Shown piece by piece: positions 11,016 to 35,870 of a stretch of 61,341 nt of DNA. This DNA is from Dimorphilus gyrociliatus (taxonomy: Eukaryota; Animalia; Annelida): the NCBI GenBank assembly GCA_904063045.1, contig CAJFCJ010000065.1, positions 1 through 61,341 on the forward strand. The letters run 5' to 3'. Under the pieces are notes generated by a model that was not told where the DNA came from, did no database searches, and worked only from the letters and a program-made list of their open reading frames with translations. A program made the position numbers and the translations under genes. Position 1 is the stretch's first letter. Each line of letters begins with the position of its first letter.

Positions 11016-11430
11016 TTATCAACACTGTTGCTTTGATGAAAGCATTGGTTTTATTGTTGGTAAAGCTATTGGAAATAATCCACATTTGGAAGATATTACT
11101 TTGGAAGATAATTAATTTAGATTAAATGTTGTAAAAGAAATATTTCAGAATATAAAAGACAATTGGTCCAATTTGAAAGCACTTACCCTCTCAAAATGTT
11201 TCCTTGATGGCAGTATTGGTGTGGTTATGGGTGAAGGTCTTGATAGTAATACACATTTGGAAAAATTACTTTTGACAATATAATTAATTGAGTCAGATGT
11301 TGGGCAAAAGGCACTTTGAAATATTAGTGACAATTGTTCTAATCTGATTCTATGCTTACTATTTGCTGATGACAACTGTGTTTTACTTTCTGGTAAAGGA
11401 ATTGGTTGCATTCTTCATTTTGGATAACTG
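11016..11430 (+). pseudogene. RI-type LRR gene remnant (5'-truncated copy)
   Basis: Broken frames read CCFDESIGFIVGKAIGNNPHLEDITLEDN and NLKALTLSKCFLDGSIGVVMGEGLDSNTHLEKLLL. The upstream part survives only in the right-arm context. Confidence 0.6.
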
Positions 11431-12555
11431 TATTTACAAAAAAAATACAATTAGATCAGATATTAAAATAGAAATATGTCAATAATTTAAAGACAACTGA
11501 TGGAATTTGTAGACTGAACCTTGAACCTCAAAATGTTATCAGTTGCTTTCTAATCTTATTATTCATATGTAGCAATTAGTTCTATTCTACCATTGATGAA
11601 TAGTAGGGGATAAAAATTGGTCTCTGCCCATTTGCATTAGTAGACTTGAGCATTAGTGACCTACTTTTATGTGGTTGTGAGCAAACAATTTGATGAAAAT
11701 ACAGTATATTTATTATTCTAGAGAAAATTGGTATTAGCCAAAACCTCTCCTCAACTGTACTTTGTTGTATAGTAATTGTCAGAATATTTTTGCACATGAG
11801 AACTGTATTTATCCTTTCTAATCATTTATCAATTTGCTAATGTGCTCACCCAAATCTAAGCTTAAATTTAAAATTACTAAACTTTAGAATGCATTCTGTT
11901 CTGAACAATACAGTTAGTTAGTCAGCATTTTACAGTTAGAGAACTTTCTAGTTCATGTTTATTTTTAGTAACAAGATGCTACATGAACCAAAACATAAAC
12001 ATTCATTTTAATGAATTAATCTTTTAAAAAATTTTCTCAATAAATAAATAAAAATTTATTTCTAAATACAAATACTTTTAAATTGGAAGAAAATACTTTT
12101 TTATATTTTCTGTTTAAAGCGACAGCTAGTAGTAATTAAATAAAAAGATATCTACAAATATTCAAGATTTATATATTTGTGTTCAATGACTTTTAAAAAT
12201 ACAAAAACATTTTGTAATTTTTTTAAATTTCTTTCATTTTCAATTTTATTTTATTAAAGAGAGAAATATAAACAAAGTTATTATAATAAAATTTTCAATT
12301 CTTCCATTATATATTTTCCATAATTTTCTAAATCAGAGTAAATATGATTATTATTTAAAATAAATTTTAAATTTTTAGATTCTATACTAAAGCCAATTGT
12401 CAGTCTTTTATTATCTGCAACTTTTTTCTGAAATAAAAGAAAAATTTGTAAAAAAATAACAGGCAAATGTTTTGTAATGAATTTTATATTTTTTTACGTA
12501 TTTGAATATTTGTAGATTGAAATTATTAAATGAAATAAAACAATTATGTAAATTA

Positions 12556-14673
12556 GGTGCAGTGACATTTCGGCCCAGGACATTTTGGCCCACTTTGGGA
12601 CATTTCCGCCCAAAATATTTCACCCCATGTTAGAAAAATAACAAGAAAAAACATGTAATTTTCAATTGCAGTTCCACATATATATATATATATATATATA
12701 AATCATTCAAAAAATTTGAAACATTTTCATATTACCAGTTTTCTTTTTTTCAAAAGTATATTTTACTTTTTTTTGAAATTTCCTTTTCCTGTTGTGAAAA
12801 AAGTAGAGGGTATATTTGTTTTCTTGCATTTCATCCTAGTTTTGATAGAAACCACAGCATGAATTTTAAAAATTGTTGGAAGTGTGGATTGAGGTTCCAC
12901 TGGACTCAAAGAAAATTCAGATGCAAGTTGTGCAGACATTTTTATCATGCAAAATGTTCAAAAAGTAAGTGTATTCTATTAAACTTTCCAATGTTTAATG
13001 CTATATCATTTATATATTAAGATACAGATTATTGCTCTGATTGTCATGATGTCAGGAGAAGACAATTATTTATTAAATTGAAGAAAATAGATAATTATCA
13101 TCAGAGTGAAATTCTTCAAGAAAGTGATATTGATATGGAATCTTCCATGGATTATGCAAGTGAAAGCAACACAAATCAGGTAATTTCAATGCTTAAAAAA
13201 TATTAATATCTCACTCTAAATTATTTTTGACAGCTGAGACTCTCTTTTGACTTTAATTCAACTGAATCATCAAATATTGAAAAAGAGGTGAATCTTCCTG
13301 ATAATAGGCAAGATATGAGAGATATGAGAGTTGACATCAGTGATGAAACTTCATTTGAGATGGATGAGCAGTGTAACATTATGGAAACTGAAACAGATGA
13401 ATTCAAAATTGTTGTTGGTGGAAGTACCAAAGGTAAAGACTTACTTCTACACAAAAATTGTTCATATTCCATGAAAAGAAAAACTGAGAGTTCAATTACC
13501 TGGAGATGTACTCAAAGATATGCTAAAAATCCTTGTACTGCATACATAATACAAAAAGGATCAAATTTCATTGTAAAAAATGGAAACCATCTTCATAAGT
13601 TGTATAAAAATCTGGAAAATGTTCTTCAATCAAGAATGGATTTGAAAGAAATGGCAAATTGTGACAATGACAAAACTGGTAAAAGAATAGCAGAAGATAT
13701 TATTCTTAAATTTAAAGATAATATTGAAGACTTACCAGAATTAGAATCACTAAGAAGAAAAGCTTCCAGATATAAAGAGAATAGAAGACCAAAGCATCCT
13801 AGAGATTTACACTTTGAAATCAATCTAGATGAAATTCCAATGGATTTCTTATTGAAAGATATAAAAGAAAAGAAAAATCAATGTATTATATTTGGTACAA
13901 ATCATCAAATAGAATTACTTGAATGTTGTAAAATTTGGTTCATTGATGCAACTTTTAAAGTTGTTAGAGATCCATTTTATCAACTCTTTTCAATTCATGG
14001 ATTCTTGAAAAAACATGATGAATATCAGCAGGTTCCATTGATTTATGTTCTGATGAGTAGCAAAAAGAAAAACTGCTATATTGCTGTTCTTCAGGTTTGA
14101 AATTTTTCAATATGATATTCACTTTTAATTTAACTCCTTATAAATGAACACAGGAGATAAGAAAATTACTGAATGATAAAACACCCAGGAAATGTGTTCT
14201 TGATTTTGAAAAGGCTATATGGATGGCACTTAAAGACCAGTTTCCTAATTCTGACCTTCAAGGATGCTCTTTTCATTTCAAGCAAGCAATTTTGAGAAAC
14301 ATTCAGGTAGATTAAACAATACTGCAAACAATTAAATATTCATAGAAAATTTTTTGTTAGAAACTTGGATACATTAATGATTATAAAGAAAATGAATATA
14401 AAGGGAAAATGTTACAAAAATTGATGTGTTTGGCCTATCTTCCAGCAAAATTTATTGAACAAAAGTTTTTTCAAATAAAAGAAGAACTTTGTGAAAAGAA
14501 ATTGTTTTCAGATTTGCTTGATTATATTGAAGAAACATTTATTAAAATTATTGTGAGAACAAACAATCATGTTGAGGCATGGCATTCCAGGCTTAACAAA
14601 AACTTGAACATGGATGAGAACTTGTATTCCCTCATAAAAGAATTAAGAAGAGAAGCTGAGTTAGTAGAGATCT
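12556..14673 (+). mobile_element. Mutator/Phantom element family B, 3'-truncated (left-arm copy)
   Basis: The 5' TIR GGTGCAGTGACATTTCGGCCC... at 12556 matches the end of the copy at 47113-49013. Homology to that copy stops at 14673, where BEL/Pao sequence begins. No 3' TIR. Confidence 0.88.
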
Positions 14674-14687
14674 ACTGGAATTCTTAA
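12859..14687 (+). pseudogene. PHD-FLYWCH-MULE transposase, 5 exons (12859-12964, 13022-13179, 13234-14094, 14154-14306, 14361-14687), truncated
   Basis: C4HC3 PHD (CWKC...CKLCRHFYHAKC...CSDC), FLYWCH-like WRC...CTA...H-x-H, IDATFK, LDFEKA...GCSFH and RTNNHVEAWH. It lacks 13 codons before RTNN and has no normal C-terminus. Confidence 0.85.
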
Positions 14688-15621
14688 TAAACAATAACAA
14701 AAGATCATAAAAGATTTTAATAATAATTATTTTTATCTAACATTGAAAATTTTGAATCATTGAACCCCATTTCAACTGTTCCAATAAGATTTAAAGGTAC
14801 ATTATCATTTGTTACAAACAATTTTTTTTGATAATTGTAATTGTAGCCTATAGAGACAAAATGTCCTTTAAAGAAAAATCTCTTAATTTTGTCAATTTAT
14901 CAGCCAGATTATTCTCTGTGGGTACATATTCCCATTGATAATCCTCAGTATGATTAAGAATTTTCTTGACTCTTTCTCTCTTGAATTGTACTAAAGGGAT
15001 ATCATTTCCATTAGGGCTGTAATTGCATGCGAACACCACTCTGAATTTCTTGTGTTTACTCTGAACTCCATGATGAGGGATGTAATTTACTATGTTAACG
15101 CCCTTTGGTTTGGGGATTGCAACCGCTTCATTCAAATATTTGTAAATTTTCTTGTCATATTTCCATTCTAAAACAGGGTTATTCTTAAAGGCTTTCAGCT
15201 GCTGTAATAGACAATTTTCCTCCATCTTCCTTGGGCAGAATTCTTTTCTTTGTCTATTAACAATAGTGCTATAATTTTATCATCTTTGATTACTGTCTCC
15301 TTTTCAAACAGTTTTGAAAGCACTTCATCTGCTATTGATATTTTTGTTTCTTTGTTCTGTGGGTTTTTAACTGCAATATTGCAGTTAACTTGCACTTTAG
15401 CATTGTTGCCAGCCTAGCTTGTTTTTTACCAAAGTCATCCCATTATCCAAATTTTTCGAATCTGTGTGGTGTAATAACGAATAATAATTATTGCCCACTA
15501 CCAAACCCACTCCTTCATTTTGAAATTGAGGGATTTCGATATTTCCATGTTTAAATTTTTGCTGGTTTACTCTTGGCAAATGTTCAATGCCATTTGCCTC
15601 GATCTAACAACCATTTATATT

Positions 15622-15812
15622 GGGGTCGGGTGTGAACGTACCTGGGTGCGAACGTACCCGGGTGCGAACGTACCCTGGGCGGGTGCGAACGTACCCTGGG
15701 CGGGTGCGAACGTACCCTGGGCGGGTGCGAACGTACCCTGGGCGGGTGCGAACGTACCCTGGGCGGGTGCGAACGTACCTGGGTACGTTCGCACCCTATT
15801 TTTATATTTATT
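15622..15812 (+). repeat. Left TIR of MULE A: tandem 20-bp units plus a 15-bp-stem hairpin
   Basis: Repeated gggtgcgaacgtaccctgggc; hairpin gggtgcgaacgtacc-tg-ggtacgttcgcaccc at 15765-15796. Confidence 0.9.
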
Positions 15813-16301
15813 TTATTTTTGAATTTTTGAATAAACATGTACATTGACACCCTTTTTTCCTTCTGTTCCTTCATTATATATTTGTTAATATATTGATTTG
15901 ATAGAATGCAGATATTAAATAGAATACATATCCCATCAATATTAAATTACTACTTTAAAAGAAAATGTTGTTGAAAGTGAAATAGCAGCCATTTTAATAG
16001 TGATAGTTTTATTAAATAAACTTTCACTTGGAATATTTATCCTTGCAAAAGTAAAGCTATATTTACTGAATAAATTTGGACAAAGTTCTTCTTGGAAGCT
16101 TCAACAGAAGTGAGTATTTATATCTAATCATTGAGATTGTTGATTCATGATATTTTGATGTAATATACTATCTTCAATTGTGAAAAAGCTGAATATTTTT
16201 CATAAATAAAATTTCAGCCATTTTGAATATTTGGAAAGGAAATTTATTGATAACTGGAAATATTTTTAGATAACCATCTACATTTGATTGAAGATTAAAA
16301 A

Positions 16302-18203
16302 ATGGCTTTCAAATGTCACAATTGTCATTCAACAATTTATGGAAGGCAAAAATATTTGAAATGCAGCCTTTGTAAGAATCTTATTCATAGGAAATGCACA
16401 GGTATGTAACTCTTTAATCAGCTTTCATGTAATTATATTTTTTAACATATTCTTATAGAAACACATAACATACCAATTTGCAAACCTTGTAACAAAAGAA
16501 AATGTACTGTCATGCTCAAGAAGTTAACTAATCTGGAAATTCATCAATTCAAAGTAAATTCTGAAGAAAGCTTTATTGATGAAAGAAATAAGATTGCTGC
16601 AGTTGAGGAATCAATATTGGAGGATGAAAATCATGTTCTTTCAGAATGCCAATCAATGGACCTAGACTCTTTGGAGGAAGTTGAAGAGAATGCTGAAGAA
16701 TATTGTGAATCATCCACAAAAAGTGATTTTGAGATTGTAAAAGGAGGAAGTAGAAAGGGACATGACATTTTACTGAATGATGGATATTCTTTTGTTGTTA
16801 AACATAAAACACCATCAAGTACTATTTGGGTGTGCAGTGTGAGAAGTAAGAAGAAAAGATGTGTGGCCAGAATAAGACAAAATGGAAATTTATTTCTCAA
16901 AGGCAATTTGGAACATAATCACAACAGAAAAAAGAATTTAGAAGTGGATATTAAAGTGAAAACAGATTTGAAAATTGTTTGCAGAAGTGATAATCAAACA
17001 TCTGGAAGAAGCATTGCTGAAAAAGTTCTTCTATCCTATGAACCCAATGCAACTTGTCTTCCTGATATCAACTATTTGAAGAGAATGGCAAACTCAAATA
17101 GACAAAAGTTTAGGCCAGTGGAACCTAAAGTGTACAACTTTAATTTAGATGAAACATTTTTGCCTGATGAATTTTTGCAGAAAGATATTTGTGAAAATGG
17201 AGAAAGAATTTTAATCTTTGCAACAAACCATCAGCTGAATTTATTATCAAAATCCAACTGTTGGTACATTGATGGTACTTTCAAGATTGTAAAAGAACCA
17301 TTTTATCAACTTGTCACTATTCACTCATTTGTTAAGAAGAGTGGTGATATGAAGCAAGTTCCTCTTGTTTTTATTTTTCTGACTTCAAAGCATACCAAAG
17401 CATACTTACAAGCATTTCAAGTAAATATTTCATATTATCTCTTCAAAAGTGATGATAAATAAAGTTGCTTTTTTGTAGCATATCAACAATCTTATCAATG
17501 ATTTTCATCCAAAAAGAATTACAATGGATTTTGAAAAAGGACTATGGAAAGCATTATCAAAAGTATATCCCCTCACTGAATTTCAAGGTTGTGTATTTCA
17601 TTTCACACAAGCAGTATACAGGAAAATACAAGTCAGTTACATTCAAATATATATAACATTATCTATTAAATAACTTATATTATTGAATAGGCTCTTGGCT
17701 ATGTAAAGAAATACAAAGAAAAAGGAAATGATTGGAAAGATTTCAGAAAATTGATGGCTCTGCCATTCTTGCCAGCACATATTATTCAACCAACATTTGA
17801 CAGCATAAATGCAGAACTTTGTGAAAAAAATAGATTTTTGGACCTGCTGCAATACTTCCAAACAAACTGGATCAAAAATAAATTATGGAAACCAAATAAC
17901 TGGTCAGTTTTTGGTTTGTCTATTAGGACCAATAATGATTGTGAAGGATGGCATCAAAGAATGAATAGTAAGCTGCCTGCTAAAGGTTCTTTTTACATGC
18001 TGGTTGATGAGCTAAAAAAAGAGTCTGAGTTGATTGCAGTTTATGAGAAATTACTGTCAGAAAAAAGGATTTACAAACATCAAAAGAAAAAGTATATTGA
18101 CATCCAAAAGAAAATTTTTGATTTATGGGATGATTTCAAGTTGAACAAATTGACATCAATTGATCTATTAATGCAGACATCCCATATCTACTCTCCAGCA
18201 TAA
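16302..18203 (+). CDS. PHD-FLYWCH-MULE transposase, 4 exons (16302-16401, 16459-17420, 17479-17631, 17691-18203), 575 aa
   Basis: All introns are GT-AG with compatible phases and the spliced frame has no stop. PHD CHNC..CSLCKNLIHRKC..CKPC; FLYWCH-like WVC..CVA..HNH; catalytic YIDGTFK, MDFEKG..GCVFH, RTNNDCEGWH. Confidence 0.9.
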
Positions 18204-18307
18204 ATATCATTTGTCAAGCTTTATTGTTTTTTAGTATAATATTTAGTCTTTTAAATACATACTTTTAGATTTATAGCTAAATCTTTTATTCAAAAATTCA
18301 AAAATAA

Positions 18308-18414
18308 AATAAATATAAAAATAGGGTGCGAACGTACCTGGGTACGTTCGCACCCGCCCAGGGTACGTTCGCACCCGGGTACGTTCACACCCAGGTACGT
18401 TCGCACCCCAACTC
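18308..18414 (-). repeat. Right TIR of MULE A (fewer tandem units)
   Basis: Reverse complement of the left TIR with fewer units; hairpin at 18324-18355. Confidence 0.9.
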
Positions 18415-18657
18415 ATTTATATTCAACTGATATAAGTCTGCAGTACGTCGAATTACTCAGAGTCCATTTATTATTAGATCTGTTTGTGCAATAGGCTTTA
18501 TTCACCACTTCTTCATTAAATCATTTCTTACTAGCATGATGTCTGATCCAGTATCTCCTATTACAACCAAGTTTTGTTGTTTAGTGTTAACCTTAATGTT
18601 AACCATATTCGCCAATTTTGCTCTGTCCTCTACCACCAGTAAAGTGTTTTCTACCTT

Positions 18658-19452
18658 TCAACAGTTATGTAAAGCAGGATGGACTTGTTGTTGGCACCTG
18701 TCACAAGGTTTTTTGGTACAATTCCTTGCTTTGGGGCCAAGCCTTAAGCAGTTTAAACATCTATTCAACTTGGTTAATTTCTCTTTTCTCACAAATTTGC
18801 TGTCCCTTTCAAATTCCAGACACTCCAACATCCTATGTCGTCGTTCACAATAATAGCAAATTATTCTCCCAGTCTGAAGATCTTTACCTTTACCATCAAA
18901 TCTATGGGCGGATTTTGATGAGCTAGAGATCAGAGAATATTGCAGATAAACCGCCCTGCTTTGTTGAGACTCTAAGAATTGAATTAACTCTTTCTCTGGT
19001 TCATATTCATTTGTGCCTATTTTACTTTTGGTTCTTTTAACCCACAGTTCCTTTAGAGAATCTGTAAAGTTTCCCACTGCTACCTCAACCATTGGTTGGA
19101 CTTGTTCCGCGCCCAACAATTTTATTACACTCCACATATATTCTGCAAGATTTACTAAGGTGTCACCAGCACCTATATCCAGTTTCCCATAGCAGTGGAT
19201 TCTGTTGACCATCTCCTCATATTTGTCTATTCTATTAAAGTGATGATCTAATCTTTCTAAAGCTGATTCAAACCTTCCACTTGGGTGGGAAGCATATTCT
19301 TCTATTTGGCTCTTGAATGACTCCTTTTTGAGTAAATTCTTAAGAGGGGGGCTTTTTGATGTAACAATCTTGAAACTAACCCTAACCCTGCCTTTTAATT
19401 GAGATGGCAATATAGAATCTTCAAAATCATCAGAGTTTATATTGCTCGCCAT
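18658..19452 (-). CDS. BEL/Pao gag-like ORF (264 aa)
   Basis: Triple zinc knuckle typical of BEL/Pao: CYYCERRHRMLEC, CLNCLRLGPKARNC (His lost) and CDRCQQQVHPALH. A stop precedes the protease region. Confidence 0.8.
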   Translation of the reverse strand: MASNINSDDFEDSILPSQLKGRVRVSFKIVTSKSPPLKNLLKKESFKSQIEEYASHPSGRFESALERLDHHFNRIDKYEEMVNRIHCYGKLDIGAGDTLVNLAEYMWSVIKLLGAEQVQPMVEVAVGNFTDSLKELWVKRTKSKIGTNEYEPEKELIQFLESQQSRAVYLQYSLISSSSKSAHRFDGKGKDLQTGRIICYYCERRHRMLECLEFERDSKFVRKEKLTKLNRCLNCLRLGPKARNCTKKPCDRCQQQVHPALHNC

Positions 19453-19649
19453 TTTTAATTTTCAAAATTTTTTCAATGGTCAAACATTCTATCTTCCAAA
19501 TGGTTATAAATACCTTTGGTTCTTGATTATTGAAATATTCTTTTCTACTGGACAATTCCCAGCAATTCTTAACTCCCAATGGTTAAGATATTCTCAACTT
19601 TCGAATGTGAGGAACAATTTAAATTCTCCTTTCTGAATCGTCCCAAAAA

Positions 19650-19906
19650 TGTAAAACTAATTCAAAATTTGTCTTATCGAGAACTTCGTCTTGTCTTTAC
19701 TTTTGAATAAAGTAGGAAAAGGACTTTATTTTAATAGTTACTGTGAAACATATATCTTAACAATATATATTACGACGGTAAAGACAATTCAGCTACTGAA
19801 CATACACCAAGGGCCACCTGGCGGGATTCTTACAACATTATGTTTAAAAGATACATCGGCCCTCTGCCGGCTATTACAAACGTTACTTATCGTATCTTAT
19901 TCAACA
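19650..19906 (-). repeat. 5' LTR of BEL/Pao element (257 bp)
   Basis: TGT...ACA bounds on the minus strand, AATAAA inside, about 200 bp upstream of gag. No recognisable canonical PBS. Confidence 0.65.
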
Positions 19907-19989
19907 TTATCTAATCAGAATAGAATAGAAAGCTAAAAATAATTGAAAATTTGAAACAATGAAATTCATTTTACTTTGGAAAAGAGAAC

Positions 19990-21942
19990 ATGACTTTGTT
20001 AATCAATGCCCTGTTCTGTTAGTAGTTTTTTAAAGAGTTTCTATTTAATTTATGCATGTCTTTTTAATTTTAAATAGTGTTAACATTAGTTGAGTGCAAC
20101 TTTTCTCGATTTGTTTGTCCCTTAAACTCTGAATTGAAGCCTATTGATGGTGCCTTTGCTGACCCCAGTTATTGTGGAACTTACTATAATTGTATCAATG
20201 GTACAGCTCATCCTCAACAATGTCCTCCTGGACTTTTATTTACTCTCCTCTTAACCAATTGTAAATATACTATGTGTGTGGAACCACATATTGCTGATTG
20301 TCCAGGAGATAATTCATCAATGATTATAGAATCTAAGGAATCTAATGAATGTTCAACAGATGTTGATGTTGTAAATAACTTTGATAAATTATGTTATATG
20401 AAAAATTCTGAGTGTGAAGATAATCGAATTGGGACATACCCTAACAAAAATGACTGTAGACAATATTATCATTGTTTTAATGGTGTTGCATGGCCTCAGC
20501 AATGTCCACAAGGTTACTTTTTCAGTCCATCTTTAAACATTCGAGATTGTGCAACAAAAGTGTGCGTTACAGCTGATGAATCTAACTGCCCTGTAGCAGG
20601 AGAATGGTCCCAATGGTCTAGGTGGAGTGAATGTAATCCATTTTGTGGAGATGGTCTACGAACTCGTACAAGAACTTGTACAAACCCTGCTCCAACAAAT
20701 GGCGGTGCTGATTGTCCAGGAAATTCAATTGATGTTTTATTATGCACAAATCCTCCATGCAATTCAAATAAAAAACCAGCATTTATGGTCTCAATGACAA
20801 GATCTACTTCATTACCATTGGGAAGATTGGTATGGAATAAAGTAAATCATGATAATGGTGATTTATTCAATACAACTACAAATTCATTAAACATAAAAAG
20901 AAATGGTTTATATTTCCTATCATCTACTGCAACAACACCTCTATCTTCAAATATAGACTTTTTAATGAAAACAAATGATTTAGGATCTAATATTGCTCTC
21001 TTTCAAGAAAATAGTTACCATAGTGATACTTTTAGCATAGGTGGAATATATTCATTAACTTCTCTGTCAAAACCTAACCAAGATATTGGAAGTATGACTG
21101 AGATTGTTAGTAGTGAAAATGGCTGTCAAACATCATGGAGTGGCTTTTTCTATGAAACAAACAATGCATTCTTAATTGGAAGAGGAACTGATTATACAAA
21201 TGTCAATAGTACAATTCCCCTTAATATTATTGTTACACTAAGGGGCGTGGCTATAAATACTGCTAAAACTGAATTAACCATATCAACAGATGGATGGTAT
21301 TTTATTCATTTTGGTACAGGTTTTAAAGATGGCAGAGATTGTTTAGTTGGTGTAGTAGTTAATGATGATCCATTACCTTCTTCAAGACATGTAGTTAAAT
21401 CTAATTTTATGTCAAGAAATAATCATGGGTCGAGAGGAATTCTTATTAAATTAAACAAAAATGATAAAATGTCATTAAAATTATTTAGAGGTTATTCAAG
21501 GTCAGCATATTTATATACATATCTATCTGGTTTTAAATTGAGTGCAACTGAACAAAGTCCAGCATTTTATGCATATAGAACTCGAAGTTTGTTCGTATCA
21601 AGAAGGGAACGGATTGATTATCAACAAATTGAACTTGACACAAACTCTGGCTGGAATCCAGGACAGAAAGCTTATAAAGTTGCAATTTCCGGTTTATATT
21701 ATATTGATGTATCAGTTGGAACATTTTCAGGATTGCAAACTGTAATATCAATTATGGTTAATGATGAAGAGAAATTGGGTATGCAAAGATTAAGATATCG
21801 AAGATATAGTGAAAGTATGAGCAGAGGAGGATTGTTAAAGTTAGAACAAGGTGATACTTTATCAGTTGAGACAATTAACGATGTCTTCAGCTCAACATGG
21901 AAATTGACATCAATAACTCTTTTTTATGTTTCATCCTCATAA
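19990..21942 (+). CDS. Secreted chitin-binding type 2 (x2) - TSP1 - C1q-like (x3) protein; exons 19990-20017 and 20078-21942
   Basis: A 60-nt GT-AG intron gives the signal peptide MTLLINALFLLTLVEC. Two peritrophin-A patterns (C..YYNC..QQCPPGLLF; C..YYHC..QQCPQGYFF), TSP1 WSQWSRWSEC..CG.G.RTRTRTC, and three gC1q-like blocks (PAF...NGLYF; NAF...DGWYF; PAF...SGLYY...L.L..GD). Confidence 0.88.
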
Positions 21943-22107
21943 TCAATTATCATTTTTTTCACATGTTTTTTGAGTACAATTGATTGAATATGAACTTGCC
22001 TATACTATCCAATCAAACATTACAACTAGTCTCTGGACATATCATGTTACAATTCACAACATTAGTAGGATTTAATCACACAAGTCATTATTGGCATAAG
22101 ATAAATT

Positions 22108-22314
22108 GGGACCGGTCGAAAACGGCCATAAATGAAATATTTGAAAGTTAGATTTCAGCCTGGGAAATGGTTAGGAGGAATAAGATAACTGTTGATATGT
22201 TCTTAGGAGGGTCCCATCTAAGGGTTAGGGGTATTCAAAAAGGTTTGACAAAAACAAGGGCTGGGTTAGGGTTAGGGTAAAACCATAGATTTATGGCCGT
22301 TTTCTACCACATCC
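22108..22314 (+). mobile_element. 207-bp Mutator-type MITE carrying GGGTTAGGGTTAGGG
   Basis: TIR core gaaaacggccataaat / atttatggccgttttc; GG...CC ends; TSD agataaatt at 22099-22107 and 22315-22323. Mirror copy at 27103-27309. Confidence 0.85.
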
Positions 22315-23290: not shown

Positions 23291-23299
23291 ATAGAAATT

Positions 23300-23600: not shown

Positions 23601-23602
23601 TA

Positions 23603-25416: not shown

Positions 25417-26049
25417 ATGTTATTGACAATTTTCATCTACTTTTGTAAGTTTTGTATAATAAATAATTTTGGTCTTGAAATTTTATTTTTCTTACTTTTA
25501 AAATTAAATTTTGCAGTTTTCCCTTCTGGAATCACTACACAGAATCCACTTGAAGACTGCAAACATATGTCTGAAAGTGAAGTTTCCAATGGGGTTAGTG
25601 AATACTATAATCTTGGATATTATTCAGGTGGATACACACCAAATACTGTGGAATGTGAGCGCCTTAGCTCACCAAAAACAAACCCCTACTTTCTTGTCAA
25701 AGTCATAGCTACAGACATGGAGGAGTCTCCAGGCTGTTTGGATGATGTTGCCGCAATATATAATGGCTCTACTGGAAACCTTGTCCGCAAGTGGTGTGGT
25801 CATATGGCAAACTTTTCATTCGAAATCAGTGGATCACATGATATTTTCTTCTATTTTAAGGCTGATTCTGACAGTCATGTTGGAAGAGGTACAAAATTTG
25901 AAATTATTGTACCCCAGAGTAGACTGCAACAGACCGAATCATCTGGTATAAACTTACCAATTATCCTTGGTGGGGGAATTGGAGGTTTTGCTGGTTTTAT
26001 TGGCTTTGCTTGCATGATATGGTGTATATGTAAATGGTGTTGCTTGTAA
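25417..26049 (+). CDS. Single CUB-domain type I membrane protein; exons 25417-25444 and 25517-26049
   Basis: A 72-nt gtaagt...ttgcag intron gives the signal peptide MLLTIFIYFFFPSGITT. CUB motifs YTPNTVEC, C..D...IYNG...KWCG, FFYFKADS; TM ILGGGIGGFAGFIGFACMIW; tail CICKWCCL*. Confidence 0.8.
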   Translation: MLLTIFIYFCKFCIINNFGLEILFFLLLKLNFAVFPSGITTQNPLEDCKHMSESEVSNGVSEYYNLGYYSGGYTPNTVECERLSSPKTNPYFLVKVIATDMEESPGCLDDVAAIYNGSTGNLVRKWCGHMANFSFEISGSHDIFFYFKADSDSHVGRGTKFEIIVPQSRLQQTESSGINLPIILGGGIGGFAGFIGFACMIWCICKWCCL

Positions 26050-26273
26050 AAACTAGCTCTCTATCAAACTATTTCACTTTTAAAAAGAATCATCAATAAA
26101 CTTGTGCACTTTAGTTCGATATAGTTGCTTTTTAAAAACCATAGACTTAATTACTTTTATTTAGAATTATATTAAGGCCTGAAAAAGCTATAATTCAATT
26201 AACTTTTGTATGAATATCATCTATTTGCAAATACTTATTCGGGAACTTGAATTTCTATTTGAAAGTGTACTTT

Positions 26274-26380
26274 GGGGATGCGACAGAAAATGTCCACAAA
26301 TCAGTGCTTTTACCCTAACCCTAACCCAGCCCTTGGCTGTATCTAACTTTTTCCATTAGCCCTGACCCAAGATTCAATGG
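26274..26380 (-). mobile_element. Partial TTAGGG-bearing MITE
   Basis: gacagaaaatgtcc terminus followed by ccctaaccctaacccagcccttg, shared with 22108-22314. Confidence 0.6.
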
Positions 26381-26515
26381 AGTTAAGAAATCATATCAAT
26401 AGTTGTAGGTAATGGTCTGCTCAGGTTGTTGGATTATCCTTTAAATCCAATATTTAATAATAAACCCATTGTATTTTGAACACTGCCAAAAATAAAAATT
26501 TCTGTTAAAATAATG

Positions 26516-26805
26516 GCAAAGTAGCTTTTTCTATATTTGTTCAAATTTAGAAAATGTCCCATTGTCTAGATTTTTCAAGAATTAAAATTACCAACAGAAC
26601 GTAATCCACTAGTTATTGTTATTTAAATTGTTATTTTCATTATATGCTTTGATGTATTAAACGTCATTGTAAAAGGATTATATCCAGTTTTTCGAAATTT
26701 GAAGAAATGACTAATAGCTTTTTTTTGGCAATGAGCCATTATAGATATTTCCAGTTAAATTGAGTACTTTTTTTCAACAAATTCATATAGAAAAAGCTAC
26801 TTTGC
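26516..26805. mobile_element. ~290-bp MITE with 21-bp TIRs
   Basis: gcaaagtagctttttctatat (26516-26536) and atatagaaaaagctactttgc (26785-26805). No TSD recognised. Confidence 0.7.
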
Positions 26806-27474
26806 TTTTGGGATTATAAGTAGAAGTTAGATAATCTTGTTTAGGCCTAGTTAACTCAAGATTATGTGAAAGTTGATACAAAGATTACTGATATTATAAT
26901 TTAAACGTTAAATGTGTCGATTACAAGAAATCAAGCATTTTAAATAGTAAATGATAAGTATTCTCTCTATAGAATAAAGTCCTAAGAATGTAGATATAAT
27001 TCGAATATATCTTCATGTAAGAAATCAAGAATATCATGCAAAGATGATATTCTCCCATCCATCAAATGCCTAATGACCAATATTGTTCAGATCAATTTAT
27101 CTGGATGTGGTAGAAAACGGCCATAAATCTATGGTTTTACCCTAACCCTAACCCAGCCCTTGTTTTTGTCAAACCTTTTTGAATACCCCTAACCCTTAGA
27201 TGGGACCCTCCTAAGAACATATCAACAGTTATCTTATTCCTCCTAACCATTTCCCAGGCTGAAATCTAACTTTCAAATATTTCATTTATGGCCGTTTTCG
27301 ACCGGTCCCAATTTATCTTATGCCAATAATGACTTGTGTGATTAAATCCTACTAATGTTGTGAATTGTAACATGATATGTCCAGAGACTAGTTGTAATGT
27401 TTGATTGGATAGTATAGGCAAGTTCATATTCAATCAATTGTACTCAAAAAACATGTGAAAAAAATGATAATTGA

Positions 27475-29427
27475 TTATGAGGATGAAACATAAAAAAGAG
27501 TTATTGATGTCAATTTCCATGTTGAGCTGAAGACATCGTTAATTGTCTCAACTGATAAAGTATCACCTTGTTCTAACTTTAACAATCCTCCTCTGCTCAT
27601 ACTTTCACTATATCTTCGATATCTTAATCTTTGCATACCCAATTTCTCTTCATCATTAACCATAATTGATATTACAGTTTGCAATCCTGAAAATGTTCCA
27701 ACTGATACATCAATATAATATAAACCGGAAATTGCAACTTTATAAGCTTTCTGTCCTGGATTCCAGCCAGAGTTTGTGTCAAGTTCAATTTGTTGATAAT
27801 CAATCCGTTCCCTTCTTGATACGAACAAACTTCGAGTTCTATATGCATAAAATGCTGGACTTTGTTCAGTTGCACTCAATTTAAAACCAGATAGATATGT
27901 ATATAAATATGCTGACCTTGAATAACCTCTAAATAATTTTAATGACATTTTATCATTTTTGTTTAATTTAATAAGAATTCCTCTCGACCCATGATTATTT
28001 CTTGACATAAAATTAGATTTAACTACATGTCTTGAAGAAGGTAATGGATCATCATTAACTACTACACCAACTAAACAATCTCTGCCATCTTTAAAACCTG
28101 TACCAAAATGAATAAAATACCATCCATCTGTTGATATGGTTAATTCAGTTTTAGCAGTATTTATAGCCACGCCCCTTAGTGTAACAATAATATTAAGGGG
28201 AATTGTACTATTGACATTTGTATAATCAGTTCCTCTTCCAATTAAGAATGCATTGTTTGTTTCATAGAAAAAGCCACTCCATGATGTTTGACAGCCATTT
28301 TCACTACTAACAATCTCAGTCATACTTCCAATATCTTGGTTAGGTTTTGACAGAGAAGTTAATGAATATATTCCACCTATGCTAAAAGTATCACTATGGT
28401 AACTATTTTCTTGAAAGAGAGCAATATTAGATCCTAAATCATTTGTTTTCATTAAAAAGTCTATATTTGAAGATAGAGGTGTTGTTGCAGTAGATGATAG
28501 GAAATATAAACCATTTCTTTTTATGTTTAATGAATTTGTAGTTGTATTGAATAAATCACCATTATCATGATTTACTTTATTCCATACCAATCTTCCCAAT
28601 GGTAATGAAGTAGATCTTGTCATTGAGACCATAAATGCTGGTTTTTTATTTGAATTGCATGGAGGATTTGTGCATAATAAAACATCAATTGAATTTCCTG
28701 GACAATCAGCACCGCCATTTGTTGGAGCAGGGTTTGTACAAGTTCTTGTACGAGTTCGTAGACCATCTCCACAAAATGGATTACATTCACTCCACCTAGA
28801 CCATTGGGACCATTCTCCTGCTACAGGGCAGTTAGATTCATCAGCTGTAACGCACACTTTTGTTGCACAATCTCGAATGTTTAAAGATGGACTGAAAAAG
28901 TAACCTTGTGGACATTGCTGAGGCCATGCAACACCATTAAAACAATGATAATATTGTCTACAGTCATTTTTGTTAGGGTATGTCCCAATTCGATTATCTT
29001 CACACTCAGAATTTTTCATATAACATAATTTATCAAAGTTATTTACAACATCAACATCTGTTGAACATTCATTAGATTCCTTAGATTCTATAATCATTGA
29101 TGAATTATCTCCTGGACAATCAGCAATATGTGGTTCCACACACATAGTATATTTACAATTGGTTAAGAGGAGAGTAAATAAAAGTCCAGGAGGACATTGT
29201 TGAGGATGAGCTGTACCATTGATACAATTATAGTAAGTTCCACAATAACTGGGGTCAGCAAAGGCACCATCAATAGGCTTCAATTCAGAGTTTAAGGGAC
29301 AAACAAATCGAGAAAAGTTGCACTCAACTAATGTTAACACTATTTAAAATTAAAAAGACATGCATAAATTAAATAGAAACTCTTTAAAAAACTACTAACA
29401 GAACAGGGCATTGATTAACAAAGTCAT
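27475..29427 (-). CDS. Second copy of the ChtBD2x2-TSP1-C1qx3 gene
   Basis: The 621-aa ORF is identical to 20077-21942 in the ORF track, with a mirrored signal-peptide exon. Confidence 0.88.
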
Positions 29428-29510
29428 GTTCTCTTTTCCAAAGTAAAATGAATTTCATTGTTTCAAATTTTCAATTATTTTTAGCTTTCTATTCTATTCT
29501 GATTAGATAA

Positions 29511-31941
29511 TGTTGAATAAGATACGATAAGTAACGTTTGTAATAGCCGGCAGAGGGCCGATGTATCTTTTAAACATAATGTTGTAAGAATCCCGCCAGG
29601 TGGCCCTTGGTGTATGTTCAGTAGCTGAATTGTCTTTACCGTCGTAATATATATTGTTAAGATATATGTTTCACAGTAACTATTAAAATAAAGTCCTTTT
29701 CCTACTTTATTCAAAAGTAAAGACAAGACGAAGTTCTCGATAAGACAAATTTTGAATTAGTTTTACATTTTTGGGACGATTCAGAAAGGAGAATTTAAAT
29801 TGTTCCTCACATTCGAAAGTTGAGAATATCTTAACCATTGGGAGTTAAGAATTGCTGGGAATTGTCCAGTAGAAAAGAATATTTCAATAATCAAGAACCA
29901 AAGGTATTTATAACCATTTGGAAGATAGAATGTTTGACCATTGAAAAAATTTTGAAAATTAAAAATGGCGAGCAATATAAACTCTGATGATTTTGAAGAT
30001 TCTATATTGCCATCTCAATTAAAAGGCAGGGTTAGGGTTAGTTTCAAGATTGTTACATCAAAAAGCCCCCCTCTTAAGAATTTACTCAAAAAGGAGTCAT
30101 TCAAGAGCCAAATAGAAGAATATGCTTCCCACCCAAGTGGAAGGTTTGAATCAGCTTTAGAAAGATTAGATCATCACTTTAATAGAATAGACAAATATGA
30201 GGAGATGGTCAACAGAATCCACTGCTATGGGAAACTGGATATAGGTGCTGGTGACACCTTAGTAAATCTTGCAGAATATATGTGGAGTGTAATAAAATTG
30301 TTGGGCGCGGAACAAGTCCAACCAATGGTTGAGGTAGCAGTGGGAAACTTTACAGATTCTCTAAAGGAACTGTGGGTTAAAAGAACCAAAAGTAAAATAG
30401 GCACAAATGAATATGAACCAGAGAAAGAGTTAATTCAATTCTTAGAGTCTCAACAAAGCAGGGCGGTTTATCTGCAATATTCTCTGATCTCTAGCTCATC
30501 AAAATCCGCCCATAGATTTGATGGTAAAGGTAAAGATCTTCAGACTGGGAGAATAATTTGCTATTATTGTGAACGACGACATAGGATGTTGGAGTGTCTG
30601 GAATTTGAAAGGGACAGCAAATTTGTGAGAAAAGAGAAATTAACCAAGTTGAATAGATGTTTAAACTGCTTAAGGCTTGGCCCCAAAGCAAGGAATTGTA
30701 CCAAAAAACCTTGTGACAGGTGCCAACAACAAGTCCATCCTGCTTTACATAACTGTTGAAAGGTAGAAAACACTTTACTGGTGGTAGAGGACAGAGCAAA
30801 ATTGGCGAATATGGTTAACATTAAGGTTAACACTAAACAACAAAACTTGGTTGTAATAGGAGATACTGGATCAGACATCATGCTAGTAAGAAATGATTTA
30901 ATGAAGAAGTGGTGAATAAAGCCTATTGCACAAACAGATCTAATAATAAATGGACTCTGAGTAATTCGACGTACTGCAGACTTATATCAGTTGAATATAA
31001 ATGGTTGTTAGATCGAGGCAAATGGCATTGAACATTTGCCAAGAGTAAACCAGCAAAAATTTAAACATGGAAATATCGAAATCCCTCAATTTCAAAATGA
31101 AGGAGTGGGTTTGGTAGTGGGCAATAATTATTATTCGTTATTACACCACACAGATTCGAAAAATTTGGATAATGGGATGACTTTGGTAAAAAACAAGCTA
31201 GGCTGGCAACAATGCTAAAGTGCAAGTTAACTGCAATATTGCAGTTAAAAACCCACAGAACAAAGAAACAAAAATATCAATAGCAGATGAAGTGCTTTCA
31301 AAACTGTTTGAAAAGGAGACAGTAATCAAAGATGATAAAATTATAGCACTATTGTTAATAGACAAAGAAAAGAATTCTGCCCAAGGAAGATGGAGGAAAA
31401 TTGTCTATTACAGCAGCTGAAAGCCTTTAAGAATAACCCTGTTTTAGAATGGAAATATGACAAGAAAATTTACAAATATTTGAATGAAGCGGTTGCAATC
31501 CCCAAACCAAAGGGCGTTAACATAGTAAATTACATCCCTCATCATGGAGTTCAGAGTAAACACAAGAAATTCAGAGTGGTGTTCGCATGCAATTACAGCC
31601 CTAATGGAAATGATATCCCTTTAGTACAATTCAAGAGAGAAAGAGTCAAGAAAATTCTTAATCATACTGAGGATTATCAATGGGAATATGTACCCACAGA
31701 GAATAATCTGGCTGATAAATTGACAAAATTAAGAGATTTTTCTTTAAAGGACATTTTGTCTCTATAGGCTACAATTACAATTATCAAAAAAAATTGTTTG
31801 TAACAAATGATAATGTACCTTTAAATCTTATTGGAACAGTTGAAATGGGGTTCAATGATTCAAAATTTTCAATGTTAGATAAAAATAATTATTATTAAAA
31901 TCTTTTATGATCTTTTGTTATTGTTTATTAAGAATTCCAGT
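29511..31941 (+). mobile_element. Internally deleted BEL/Pao element (uninterrupted right-arm copy)
   Basis: LTR 29511-29767, gag 29965-30759, GDTGSD protease at ~30860, RT and RNase H fragments in 31390-31767. No integrase and no 3' LTR. Confidence 0.87.
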
Positions 31942-34059
31942 AGATCTCTACTAACTCAGCTTCTCTTCTTAATTCTCTTATGAGGGAATACAAGTTCTCA
32001 TCCATGTTCAAGTTTTTGTTAAGCCTGGAATGCCATGCCTCAACATGATTGTTTGTTCTCACAATAATTTTAATAAATGTTTCTTCAATATAATCAAGCA
32101 AATCTGAAAACAATTTCTTTTCACAAAGTTCTTCTTTTATTTGAAAAAACTTTTGTTCAATAAATTTTGCTGGAAGATAGGCCAAACACATCAATTTTTG
32201 TAACATTTTCCCTTTATATTCATTTTCTTTATAATCATTAATGTATCCAAGTTTCTAACAAAAAATTTTCTATGAATATTTAATTGTTTGCAGTATTGTT
32301 TAATCTACCTGAATGTTTCTCAAAATTGCTTGCTTGAAATGAAAAGAGCATCCTTGAAGGTCAGAATTAGGAAACTGGTCTTTAAGTGCCATCCATATAG
32401 CCTTTTCAAAATCAAGAACACATTTCCTGGGTGTTTTATCATTCAGTAATTTTCTTATCTCCTGTGTTCATTTATAAGGAGTTAAATTAAAAGTGAATAT
32501 CATATTGAAAAATTTCAAACCTGAAGAACAGCAATATAGCAGTTTTTCTTTTTGCTACTCATCAGAACATAAATCAATGGAACCTGCTGATATTCATCAT
32601 GTTTTTTCAAGAATCCATGAATTGAAAAGAGTTGATAAAATGGATCTCTAACAACTTTAAAAGTTGCATCAATGAACCAAATTTTACAACATTCAAGTAA
32701 TTCTATTTGATGATTTGTACCAAATATAATACATTGATTTTTCTTTTCTTTTATATCTTTCAATAAGAAATCCATTGGAATTTCATCTAGATTGATTTCA
32801 AAGTGTAAATCTCTAGGATGCTTTGGTCTTCTATTCTCTTTATATCTGGAAGCTTTTCTTCTTAGTGATTCTAATTCTGGTAAGTCTTCAATATTATCTT
32901 TAAATTTAAGAATAATATCTTCTGCTATTCTTTTACCAGTTTTGTCATTGTCACAATTTGCCATTTCTTTCAAATCCATTCTTGATTGAAGAACATTTTC
33001 CAGATTTTTATACAACTTATGAAGATGGTTTCCATTTTTTACAATGAAATTTGATCCTTTTTGTATTATGTATGCAGTACAAGGATTTTTAGCATATCTT
33101 TGAGTACATCTCCAGGTAATTGAACTCTCAGTTTTTCTTTTCATGGAATATGAACAATTTTTGTGTAGAAGTAAGTCTTTACCTTTGGTACTTCCACCAA
33201 CAACAATTTTGAATTCATCTGTTTCAGTTTCCATAATGTTACACTGCTCATCCATCTCAAATGAAGTTTCATCACTGATGTCAACTCTCATATCTCTCAT
33301 ATCTTGCCTATTATCAGGAAGATTCACCTCTTTTTCAATATTTGATGATTCAGTTGAATTAAAGTCAAAAGAGAGTCTCAGCTGTCAAAAATAATTTAGA
33401 GTGAGATATTAATATTTTTTAAGCATTGAAATTACCTGATTTGTGTTGCTTTCACTTGCATAATCCATGGAAGATTCCATATCAATATCACTTTCTTGAA
33501 GAATTTCACTCTGATGATAATTATCTATTTTCTTCAATTTAATAAATAATTGTCTTCTCCTGACATCATGACAATCAGAGCAATAATCTGTATCTTAATA
33601 TATAAATGATATAGCATTAAACATTGGAAAGTTTAATAGAATACACTTACTTTTTGAACATTTTGCATGATAAAAATGTCTGCACAACTTGCATCTGAAT
33701 TTTCTTTGAGTCCAGTGGAACCTCAATCCACACTTCCAACAATTTTTAAAATTCATGCTGTGGTTTCTATCAAAACTAGGATGAAATGCAAGAAAACAAA
33801 TATACCCTCTACTTTTTTCACAACAGGAAAAGGAAATTTCAAAAAAAAGTAAAATATACTTTTGAAAAAAAGAAAACTGGTAATATGAAAATGTTTCAAA
33901 TTTTTTGAATGATTTATATATATATATATATATATATGTGGAACTGCAATTGAAAATTACATGTTTTTTCTTGTTATTTTTCTAACATGGGGTGAAATAT
34001 TTTGGGCGGAAATGTCCCAAAGTGGGCCAAAATGTCCTGGGCCGAAATGTCACTGCACC
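31942..34059 (-). mobile_element. Mutator/Phantom family B, truncated (right-arm copy)
   Basis: Mirror of 12556-14673, with one K/R codon difference. Confidence 0.88.
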
Positions 34060-35184
34060 TAATTTACATAATTGTTTTATTTCATTTAATAATTTCAATC
34101 TACAAATATTCAAATACGTAAAAAAATATAAAATTCATTACAAAACATTTGCCTGTTATTTTTTTACAAATTTTTCTTTTATTTCAGAAAAAAGTTGCAG
34201 ATAATAAAAGACTGACAATTGGCTTTAGTATAGAATCTAAAAATTTAAAATTTATTTTAAATAATAATCATATTTACTCTGATTTAGAAAATTATGGAAA
34301 ATATATAATGGAAGAATTGAAAATTTTATTATAATAACTTTGTTTATATTTCTCTCTTTAATAAAATAAAATTGAAAATGAAAGAAATTTAAAAAAATTA
34401 CAAAATGTTTTTGTATTTTTAAAAGTCATTGAACACAAATATATAAATCTTGAATATTTGTAGATATCTTTTTATTTAATTACTACTAGCTGTCGCTTTA
34501 AACAGAAAATATAAAAAAGTATTTTCTTCCAATTTAAAAGTATTTGTATTTAGAAATAAATTTTTATTTATTTATTGAGAAAATTTTTTAAAAGATTAAT
34601 TCATTAAAATGAATGTTTATGTTTTGGTTCATGTAGCATCTTGTTACTAAAAATAAACATGAACTAGAAAGTTCTCTAACTGTAAAATGCTGACTAACTA
34701 ACTGTATTGTTCAGAACAGAATGCATTCTAAAGTTTAGTAATTTTAAATTTAAGCTTAGATTTGGGTGAGCACATTAGCAAATTGATAAATGATTAGAAA
34801 GGATAAATACAGTTCTCATGTGCAAAAATATTCTGACAATTACTATACAACAAAGTACAGTTGAGGAGAGGTTTTGGCTAATACCAATTTTCTCTAGAAT
34901 AATAAATATACTGTATTTTCATCAAATTGTTTGCTCACAACCACATAAAAGTAGGTCACTAATGCTCAAGTCTACTAATGCAAATGGGCAGAGACCAATT
35001 TTTATCCCCTACTATTCATCAATGGTAGAATAGAACTAATTGCTACATATGAATAATAAGATTAGAAAGCAACTGATAACATTTTGAGGTTCAAGGTTCA
35101 GTCTACAAATTCCATCAGTTGTCTTTAAATTATTGACATATTTCTATTTTAATATCTGATCTAATTGTATTTTTTTTGTAAATA

Positions 35185-35870
35185 CAGTTATCCAAAATGA
35201 AGAATGCAACCAATTCCTTTACCAGAAAGTAAAACACAGTTGTCATCAGCAAATAGTAAGCATAGAATCAGATTAGAACAATTGTCACTAATATTTCAAA
35301 GTGCCTTTTGCCCAACATCTGACTCAATTAATTATATTGTCAAAAGTAATTTTTCCAAATGTGTATTACTATCAAGACCTTCACCCATAACCACACCAAT
35401 ACTGCCATCAAGGAAACATTTTGAGAGGGTAAGTGCTTTCAAATTGGACCAATTGTCTTTTATATTCTGAAATATTTCTTTTACAACATTTAATCTAAAT
35501 TAATTATCTTCCAAAGTAATATCTTCCAAATGTGGATTATTTCCAATAGCTTTACCAACAATAAAACCAATGCTTTCATCAAAGCAACAGTGTTGATAAA
35601 ATAAGTTCCTTTAAATTTGAACAGTGATCTCTTAAATTTTGAAATATTTCTCTTTTAACATTTGACCCAATTGTATTGTTATTCAAATTCAGTTCTTTCA
35701 AATGTTGATTACATTTTTTATTAAACAAGGAAGCAAAGCTAAACAATGGTACACTTTTGTAAAAGTCTTCTGTTCTTCTGAGATTGAATTCCATTGCATT
35801 CAATTTTTTGTCTGAAATTGCCTTTAGATTCAAAGTGTTTTCTCCAATGGCCAATTTCTTAAATATTTTT
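35185..35870 (-). pseudogene. RI-type LRR pseudogene crossing the outer breakpoint of the right arm
   Basis: ORF 35579-35854 (HLKELNLNNNTIG...NLKELILS) continues through a frameshift into the duplicated LRR remnant. Confidence 0.65.

Follow-up and report, generated by a model that had tools for sequence, protein, structure and literature searches.

Young inverted pairs with a short unique spacer were reportedly described by Katju and Lynch in 2003 among the newborn duplicates of Caenorhabditis elegans, while the gene-bearing palindromes of primate sex chromosomes (Skaletsky/Rozen 2003) are said to be maintained by arm-to-arm gene conversion. The inverted duplications that flank inversions in Drosophila reportedly arose from staggered breaks, as put forward by Ranz et al. 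in 2007. In the first assembly of Adineta vaga, palindromes were also observed, which were later shown to be artifacts of haplotype scaffolding (PMC8494291).

Here, we analyzed a stretch of 61,341 nucleotides from the annelid Dimorphilus gyrociliatus (contig CAJFCJ010000065.1 of the assembly GCA_904063045.1, positions 1 to 61,341, hereafter the window), which harbors a palindrome-like pair of long inverted arms. Its layout resembles that of the C. elegans newborn duplicates, in that a local, kb-scale inverted copy seems to lie beside its source with a few kb of unduplicated DNA between them, and whole genes are carried in almost identical sequence; however, the arms here appear longer (at least 13-16 kb), and the left copy has already been struck by two or three active transposons. 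As in the primate palindromes, the arms are >99.9% identical, the spacer is unique, the duplicated genes belong to a multi-copy family and gene conversion is a candidate cause of the likeness, but the present structure is about 100 times smaller and tolerates unshared TE insertions; location on a sex chromosome is a feature of the primate palindromes, and nothing places the Dimorphilus palindrome on one. With the staggered breaks of Drosophila it shares the order of arm, inverted middle and mirrored arm, the blunt junctions and the lack of any need for pre-existing repeats. An inversion of the middle, as in Drosophila, would be a candidate event at most here, and the junction at 11015/11016 is an ordinary retroelement insertion. 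The palindromes of Adineta vaga likewise come from a small invertebrate whose assembly involved haplotype handling and scaffolding; they were, however, produced by the scaffolding of phased haplotypes, whereas the present structure is free of gaps, has a unique, asymmetric spacer and shows different neighbors for its two copies (PMC8494291).

Structure of the Inverted Repeat

The left arm (11016-22608) and the right arm (26809-35599, reverse strand, 8,791 nt uninterrupted) have 8,791 bases in common with two substitutions and no indel. This identity of 99.98% over 8.8 kb is far above chance, and arms that are reverse complementary at such high identity are one mark of an inverted segmental duplication. 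The repeat search and the base-by-base comparison revealed that the outer segment of the left arm (11016-15621, forward strand, 4,606 nt) mirrors 30994-35599 with a coordinate sum of 46615, while the inner segment (18414-22608, forward strand, 4,195 nt) mirrors 26809-31003 with a coordinate sum of 49417, exactly as claimed in the preliminary description. One substitution is located in each segment, with A at 14638 against G at 31977 in the outer one and T at 22510 against C at 26907 in the inner one, and in structure the arms differ only by 2,792 nt inserted into the left one at 15622-18413. The two substitutions and the one TE insertion noticed earlier are therefore precisely what the full arm comparison returned, and since there is no indel, all microsatellite lengths are equal between the arms, including those of the TA microsatellites for which this had been stated. 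The window contains no N (count of 0), and in the search of the genome (77.9 Mb) the whole arm as a unit was detected at this locus only.

The spacer between the arms (22609-26808) is 4,200 nt in length, single copy in the 77.9 Mb searched, non-palindromic and without a Pfam-recognisable ORF, and the search for an internal inverted repeat within it found none. An unduplicated, non-palindromic spacer is likewise a mark of inverted segmental duplication. In a fold-back or mis-join, the arms would be expected to meet at a point, an adapter or a scaffold gap and to be flanked by the same sequence; here, they are separated by 4.2 kb of unique sequence without N, and the flanks differ at all four ends, the start of the spacer being unlike the reverse of its end. 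The inner junctions visible in the contig are blunt. Both ends of the spacer carry the 5-nt sequence GCTTT, but because this repeat is direct it is unable to prime a fold-back; no sign of priming by microhomology or fold-back is visible at these junctions, and this mechanism was rejected. No ORF crosses 22608/22609, and the only one across 26808/26809 has 32 codons. No tRNA or other RNA gene was found at the junctions, the only such gene detected being a U1 snRNA gene at 4551-4712, inside the arm of a separate palindrome described below.

Gene Content of the Arms

Two gene copies, convergent on the spacer, were found in the arms. The left copy (19990-21942, forward strand) consists of exon 1 (19990-20017), a 60-nt GT..AG intron (20018-20077) and exon 2 (20078-21942). 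The right copy (27475-29427, reverse strand) is the same throughout its exons and intron and over 1.58 kb of the 5′ flank, and the two differ only by a MULE located 1.58 kb upstream of the left copy. The open 621-codon exon is the same in both arms, and the Pfam search on exon 2 returned matches to CBM_14 (2.3e-18, two stretches), TSP_1 (1e-11) and C1q (PF00386, 2.2e-17, two stretches). Exon 1, of 28 nt, provides the ATG and the signal peptide, as judged from a splice inferred from the sequence, and the predicted protein is a secreted one of 630 aa with two CBM_14, one TSP_1 and two C1q-like domains. These are the characters of C1q-domain secreted lectin-like proteins, with the signal peptide predicted from the 28-nt first exon. 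The doubling of an intact ChtBD2-TSP1-C1q gene, which had been proposed before, holds, given that the upstream 28-nt exon brings the start codon and signal peptide. The CBM_14-TSP1-C1q family comprises at least 70 loci, and three further inverted pairs were detected within it, each with both members on one contig and with equal or nearly equal scores (C74:58283/76306, C193:13451/30524 and C3:1009531/1016424).

Transposon Insertions and the Outer Edge

The insertion at 15622-18413 (forward strand) is a probable MULE-type DNA transposon with a FLYWCH ORF, the only domain recovered in the domain search, and sub-repeated terminal inverted repeats. Mutator-like elements are marked by such terminal repeats, a TSD of 9-11 bp and a MULE transposase. 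Its 10-bp TSD, CATTTATATT, is present as a direct repeat at 15612-15621 and 18414-18423, and the corresponding site of the right arm (30994-31003) is empty. The element is present in at least 18 full-length copies, with 99-100% identity and the same last base in all. An older nested MULE (12555-14673), with FLYWCH and a weak, sub-threshold match to a MULE transposase (PF10551, E=0.0017), occurs in many copies at 97% and is common to both arms (mirror copy 31942-34060).

A 5′-truncated Dingle retroelement of Ty3/gypsy type (7932-11015, forward strand; >30 copies at 99%) lies directly outside the left arm and contains an env-like ORF, a polypurine tract and a 3′ LTR (10381-11015). The Dingle LTR is 635 nt in length with TG..CA ends and an adjoining polypurine tract, 4-bp TSDs were observed at six of six solo LTRs, and a full copy showed PNMA-like, RVT_1, RT_RNaseH and rve matches (Pfam). 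The LTR ends, polypurine tract, TSDs, gag-RT-RNaseH-integrase order and downstream env-like ORF of a Ty3/gypsy LTR element are thus all present. HHpred has matched the env ORF to herpes gB (PMC7854359); phmmer against PDB gave no match and did not recover this likeness. With copies that are 99-100% alike, the MULE and Dingle families are in a current burst, as also stated for D. gyrociliatus (PMC7854359).

The outer edge of the arms, 11016/35599, had been taken as the boundary of the duplication, a claim that was not borne out. It is an ordinary Dingle insertion site with the 4-bp TSD TTAT, which forms the first 4 nt of the left arm: the left arm has the order 3′ LTR-TTAT-arm, an orphan piece of the assembly has flank-TTAT-5′ LTR, and the right arm has flank-TTAT-arm, the empty site (ATAA at 35596-35599). 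A duplication or inversion breakpoint abutting a TE end at this position was likewise rejected in favor of normal Dingle integration.

Counting a probable second Dingle insertion, three TE insertions are set against two substitutions in about 16 kb, a surprising ratio that runs counter to a simple, very young history. All of the TE insertions are found in one copy, as expected of one of two haplotypes, which is a counterpoint to a real duplication.

Extent of the Duplicated Segment

Because the outer edge results from a later Dingle insertion, the duplicated segment is longer than the visible arms. The sequence next to the right arm, R (35600-39734, forward strand), has a second copy at C37:142035-146150, with 0 substitutions and 22 one-base deletions; this copy is on the orphan piece, which sits between N gaps, and adjoins the Dingle 5′ LTR with the flank TTAT. 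As judged from this match, the second copy extended at least to 39734, giving a segment of at least 12.9 kb. A probable further continuation, R2 (39824-42926, forward strand), has its second copy at C5:105682-108787, with 0 substitutions and three one-base indels, adjoining another Dingle 5′ LTR. The homology of the R2 copies stops at 42926|42927, and the second copy probably extended to 42926, that is, over about 16 kb (16.1 kb; right copy 26809-42926). A C71 paralogue (75-79%) runs unbroken across 39734-39824 and 42926/42927, and for this reason the right-hand context is parental. The outer neighbors are unlike, with a repeat cluster on C5, where the outer end of the copy abuts a 1.42-kb repeat, against unique sequence from 42927 onwards.

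Quality of the Assembly

The assembly was obtained from pooled animals with PBcR, HaploMerger2 and SSPACE-LongRead, and local faults were observed, including an unmerged 7.2-kb contig overlap, an orphan 6.9-kb piece and retroelement copies with mismatched flanks and N gaps. The Dingle fragment is joined to unrelated sequence at 7931/7932 via a 5-nt overlap, GTTGT, and gap arithmetic points to a probable mis-join somewhere inside 7932-11015, which would make a chimera of the contig's left flank. The published assembly therefore appears unreliable around Dingle copies, which matters for synteny or copy-number work on these scaffolds. Low-coverage pieces of the assembly contain about one one-base indel error per 100 nt, whereas the left arm shows none against the right arm and, for lack of such errors, must have been built from several reads. 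A second palindrome, P2, is older; one of its arms lies on the same contig (3303-7936) and the other at C133:32776-37306. Between the P2 arms there are eight substitutions and an indel of 102 nt, and identity between the outer arms of C133 is 98.4%, so that inverted duplicates of graded age exist here.

Origin of the Inverted Repeat

A recent palindrome, one homogenised by gene conversion and two mis-joined haplotypes had been offered as possible readings. The first two, separately or together, as a real duplication, gained from the unique arm unit, the single-copy non-palindromic spacer, the different neighbors and the clean consensus, while the topology does not fit the third. We consider it likely that this TE-rich region harbors a genuine inverted segmental duplication, either of recent origin or homogenised by gene conversion; the feature belongs to a known, ordinary kind. 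After removal of the TE insertions, both the inner and the outer neighbors of the two copies differ, as in paralogous and not allelic sequences. The evidence that both arms would lie on one DNA molecule is the continuity of the contig, without any N.

Under this real duplication, the right copy, as the parent, would have given one reversed copy at a distance of 4.2 kb, with the spacer left out of the duplication; the segment would measure at least 12.9 kb and probably 16.1 kb. The blunt inner junctions would favor a break-and-join or staggered-break event over a microhomology-primed fold-back. Subsequently, the left copy gained one MULE (10-bp TSD) and one Dingle (4-bp TSD), a second Dingle insertion being probable, and the two point differences arose, of which one is a derived change of the right arm. 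The visible outer limit of the arms was set by the Dingle insertion and not by the duplication, the near-identity reflects youth and/or arm-to-arm gene conversion, and the outcome is two identical, convergent and complete copies of a secreted CBM_14-TSP1-C1q gene.

As a sub-case of the real duplication, the palindrome might be older and held near-identical by ongoing arm-to-arm gene conversion, which we regard as possible but doubtful. Point differences are removed by conversion more readily than large insertions are, and a count of three unshared TE insertions and only two substitutions over about 16 kb agrees with this, although the MULE and Dingle copies are 99-100% identical, so that a very high present rate of insertion may be explanation enough. 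Of the two substitutions, one lies at 98 nt from the inner edge, a place where conversion works least well; however, a sample of two has no statistical power (by chance, one or both would lie within 98 nt of an edge in ~9% of cases), and the adjacent palindrome P2 has diverged normally.

Alternatively, the structure could be an assembly artifact, in which each haplotype would have one copy and the filled (with Dingle and MULE) and empty versions would be alleles of the pooled sample strung together via the common spacer, for example, if the 4.2-kb spacer had opposite orientations in the two haplotypes, or if one of the inner junctions were a chimeric join. The pooled animals, the haplotype merger and the long-read scaffolder would speak for this, as would the faults nearby, the leftover alternative pieces with 0 substitutions, the TE insertions all on one copy and the precedent of Adineta vaga (PMC8494291). 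Alleles must, however, have the same neighbors, and here the inner and outer neighbors differ. The spacer is unique, non-palindromic and without a repeat long enough to mislead 5-kb-plus reads, the structure is without any N, and the alternative junctions needed by the spacer inversion were found on no contig in the contig search. A missed-adapter fold-back would leave neither a 4.2-kb spacer nor a TE difference between the arms, and the consensus of the left arm is clean. On these sequence features, a haplotype mis-join is unlikely.

The inverted arms, the nested TEs and the TE ends abutting several junctions also recall a gene-carrying transposon of the foldback or pack type, in which the terminal inverted repeats are very long, but this was rejected as extremely improbable, since a single arm-spacer-arm unit was detected in the 77.9 Mb, with only the nested TEs repeated, the visible outer ends are the Dingle retroelement insertion site and not termini, the homology runs on past them, and transposase is absent except for the nested MULEs.

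Implications

The palindrome alone opens no new question. If real, the duplication would provide a cleanly dated snapshot of a compact annelid genome enlarging a big family of secreted, recognition-type genes, in which a whole-gene inverted copy is still almost identical and filled and empty transposon sites, side by side, order the later events. Near-identical inverted pairs may even be a recurrent, possibly favored route by which the CBM_14-TSP1-C1q family grows and stays uniform in this very compact genome, a suggestion that we make with little confidence. If it were true, such pairs would parallel, on a small scale and on autosomes, the sex-chromosome palindromes that conversion maintains, and the genes affected would probably serve immune recognition.

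Structure of the palindrome and its arms

Repeat search and base-by-base comparison placed the outer arm segments at 11016-15621, mirrored by 30994-35599, and the inner segments at 18414-22608, mirrored by 26809-31003, both inverted. The preliminary description had claimed near-identical mirrored arms differing by two substitutions and one transposon insertion, and this proved exact to the base: the 8,791 common bases are free of indels and differ by substitution at just two positions, 14638/31977 and 22510/26907, and the left arm carries an additional 2,792 nt, a putative MULE, at 15622-18413 with the 10-bp direct repeat CATTTATATT on either side, for which the right arm retains the corresponding unoccupied site. 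The spacer measures 4,200 nt and is single copy by assembly search, sensitive self-comparison detected no internal palindrome in it, and no N bases occur across the whole window. The searched assembly comprises 77.9 Mb in 349 pieces, with the window forming the first 61 kb of C65. The complete right arm matched this locus only, with just the nested elements recurring elsewhere, which rules out the arm being a repeat family.

A 171-nt tandem repeat occupies the outer end of each arm, which further holds an older nested MULE (12555-14673 / 31942-34060) that recurs many times in the assembly at 97%, a MITE (22103-22315 / 27102-27314) and one gene. The main exon of this gene is an open frame of 621 codons, in which a domain search of this exon identified two CBM_14, one TSP_1 and two C1q-like stretches. 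This exon has no start codon of its own; an ATG with a hydrophobic leader lies directly 5′ at 19990-20017, followed by a 60-nt GT..AG intron and an in-frame junction at 20078, so that the predicted product, with the splice deduced from sequence, would be a secreted protein of 630 aa. The doubling of an intact gene is thus borne out, with the start codon supplied by the putative upstream exon; the two copies are identical and both converge on the spacer. Further to the right, on the minus strand, lie two rhodopsin-family GPCR ORFs (7tm_1) at 52629-53606 and 56381-57745, the latter with a weak LDL-receptor class A match at its N-terminus.

Outer boundary and probable extent of the duplication

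The stretch at 7932-11015 is the 3′ part of the LTR retroelement Dingle, which has more than 30 copies at 99% in the assembly and whose full copy encodes a PNMA-like gag, RT, RNase H and integrase. Its LTR (10381-11015, 635 nt) has TG..CA ends and a polypurine tract just before it, and perfect 4-bp target duplications were found at six of six solo Dingle LTRs. The left arm reads 3′LTR|TTAT-arm, and the right-arm junction, on the opposite strand, reads flank-TTAT-arm, an empty site; the outer edge (11016/35599) is therefore ruled out as a duplication breakpoint. An identical flank-TTAT followed by the 5′LTR was obtained at C37:139238-146150, an orphan piece of 6.9 kb (L016-L017) holding the 5′ 2.8 kb of Dingle and a copy of window 35596-39734. 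This piece sits between N gaps of 101 and 2,966 nt and was apparently placed in its scaffold via the repeat alone. Its 4.1-kb flank differs from window 35596-39734 by no substitutions and 22 one-base deletions, the kind of error seen where coverage at the end of a contig is low. The 171-nt array is continuous over 35599/35600 on the right and ends at the LTR on the left. The filled and empty TTAT sites, the C37 flank match and this array pattern show that one Dingle integrated normally into the left copy, which originally ran on into the reverse of 35600-39734.

The duplicated segment probably also covers 39824-42926, whose second copy at C5:105682-108787 shows no substitutions and adjoins a Dingle 5′ LTR; this extension is held at probable because scaffold links near Dingle copies are unreliable. 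Homology of the two copies stops at 42926|42927, and a C71 paralogue (75-79%) is unbroken over 39669-43371, so the context on the right is the parental one. At its outer end the C5 copy borders a 1.42-kb repeat (C5:104264-105683, L019/L020). The same repeat forms an inverted pair on C75 (79472-80877 / 90721-92126) enclosing a stretch that resembles part of the arms at 92-96%, and its last 138 nt also occur within both arms (14856-14993 / 31622-31759).

Age and formation

Two substitutions per 8.8 kb, and still two per ~16 kb with the extensions, indicate either a very young copy or one that gene conversion has homogenised. The left arm has, at 14638, the base of other nested-MULE family copies, and the change is therefore derived in the right arm. 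Full copies of the inserted MULE's family number at least 18, with 99-100% identity, and Dingle LTRs are likewise 99-100% alike, suggesting that insertions are frequent at present. The imbalance between three insertions and two substitutions is one that conversion would explain neatly. No microhomology was found at the inner junctions (22608/22609 and 26808/26809). The 5-nt GCTTT at both spacer ends (22609-22613 and 26804-26808) is a direct repeat, which rules it out as a fold-back primer; the pair may be coincidental (probability roughly 0.2-1%) or a relic of the centre's origin. The palindrome may have arisen as an inserted inverted copy or by a staggered-break inversion.

Assembly faults and the reality of the duplication

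The published assembly of Dimorphilus gyrociliatus derives from pooled females and was produced with PacBio RS II reads, PBcR, Quiver, Pilon, HaploMerger2 and SSPACE-LongRead (PMC7854359); the active MULEs observed here, and an abundant Ty3/gypsy-type element that has an env-like ORF downstream, fit that report. Window 1-7180 is the reverse of C133:17208-24378, with one substitution and 13 one-base indels; two contig ends overlap here and were left unmerged. A 3,992-N gap in C133 (13216-17207) separates this overlap from the continuation of C133's own palindrome arm, and its size fits 756 nt, the 3,084-nt Dingle fragment and 14 nt; a mis-join of C65 within 7932-11015 is therefore probable. Junction 7931/7932 shows a 5-nt overlap, GTTGT, and was not made by integrase. 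On C37 and C5, the 'full-length' Dingle copies are interrupted by N, and the flanks of each disagree. These nearby faults leave the palindrome centre untouched. On C120, Dingle LTRs L034/L035 (77481-78116, minus; 68662-69297, plus) have a common 3′ flank, TTATACAAAATT, in opposite orientation, and one of them adjoins an N gap; the pair represents a further inverted duplicate or an artefact of scaffolding.

The preliminary description had offered a young, a converted or a mis-joined haplotype copy. A real inverted duplication is favoured with fair confidence, and a plain mis-join is disfavoured, since alleles must have common neighbours and these copies do not: one copy meets the spacer start and the other the reverse of the spacer end, and outwardly a repeat cluster follows one copy and unique sequence, beginning at 42927, the other. 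The spacer lacks a repeat able to mislead reads of at least 5 kb, and the left arm is free of the single-base errors seen in this assembly where coverage is thin, suggesting that several reads back it. An artefact could still have arisen if haplotypes differing only in the orientation of the spacer were merged, or if one of the inner junctions was joined chimerically, and the precedent in Adineta vaga (PMC8494291) is a fair warning. A missed-adapter fold-back is rejected, as it would give neither a 4.2-kb unique spacer nor a transposon difference.

A neighbouring palindrome, P2 (window 3303-7936 / C133:32776-37306, L013-L014), has 4.6-kb arms differing by eight substitutions and a 102-nt indel, a spacer of ~11.7 kb, and is older than the main palindrome; the entire C133 scaffold (48.6 kb) is palindromic, with outer arms 98.4% alike. 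Inverted duplicates of graded age therefore exist here, which speaks for a real duplication. A complete U1 snRNA gene (4551-4712, minus strand; Rfam RF00003, 91 bits) lies within the P2 arm and was duplicated along with it.

Comparison and significance

The palindrome belongs in one class with the young inverted gene duplicates of other animals, and its form resembles conversion-maintained palindromes, on a much smaller scale. Useful outcomes are the corrected anatomy, the order of events read from filled versus empty insertion sites, and the warning that the assembly around Dingle copies is unreliable. Few families are expanded in this genome, mainly immune-type genes duplicated locally (PMC7854359). 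The family of the arm gene has at least 70 loci, ~45 of them open, with the closest paralogue at 66% identity. Inverted same-contig pairs of this family were also observed at C74:58283-60079/76306-78102, C193:13451-15259/30524-32332 and C3:1009531-1011381/1016424-1018274, with equal or near-equal protein-search scores within each pair. Palindromic pairs may be recurring in the CBM_14-TSP1-C1q family.
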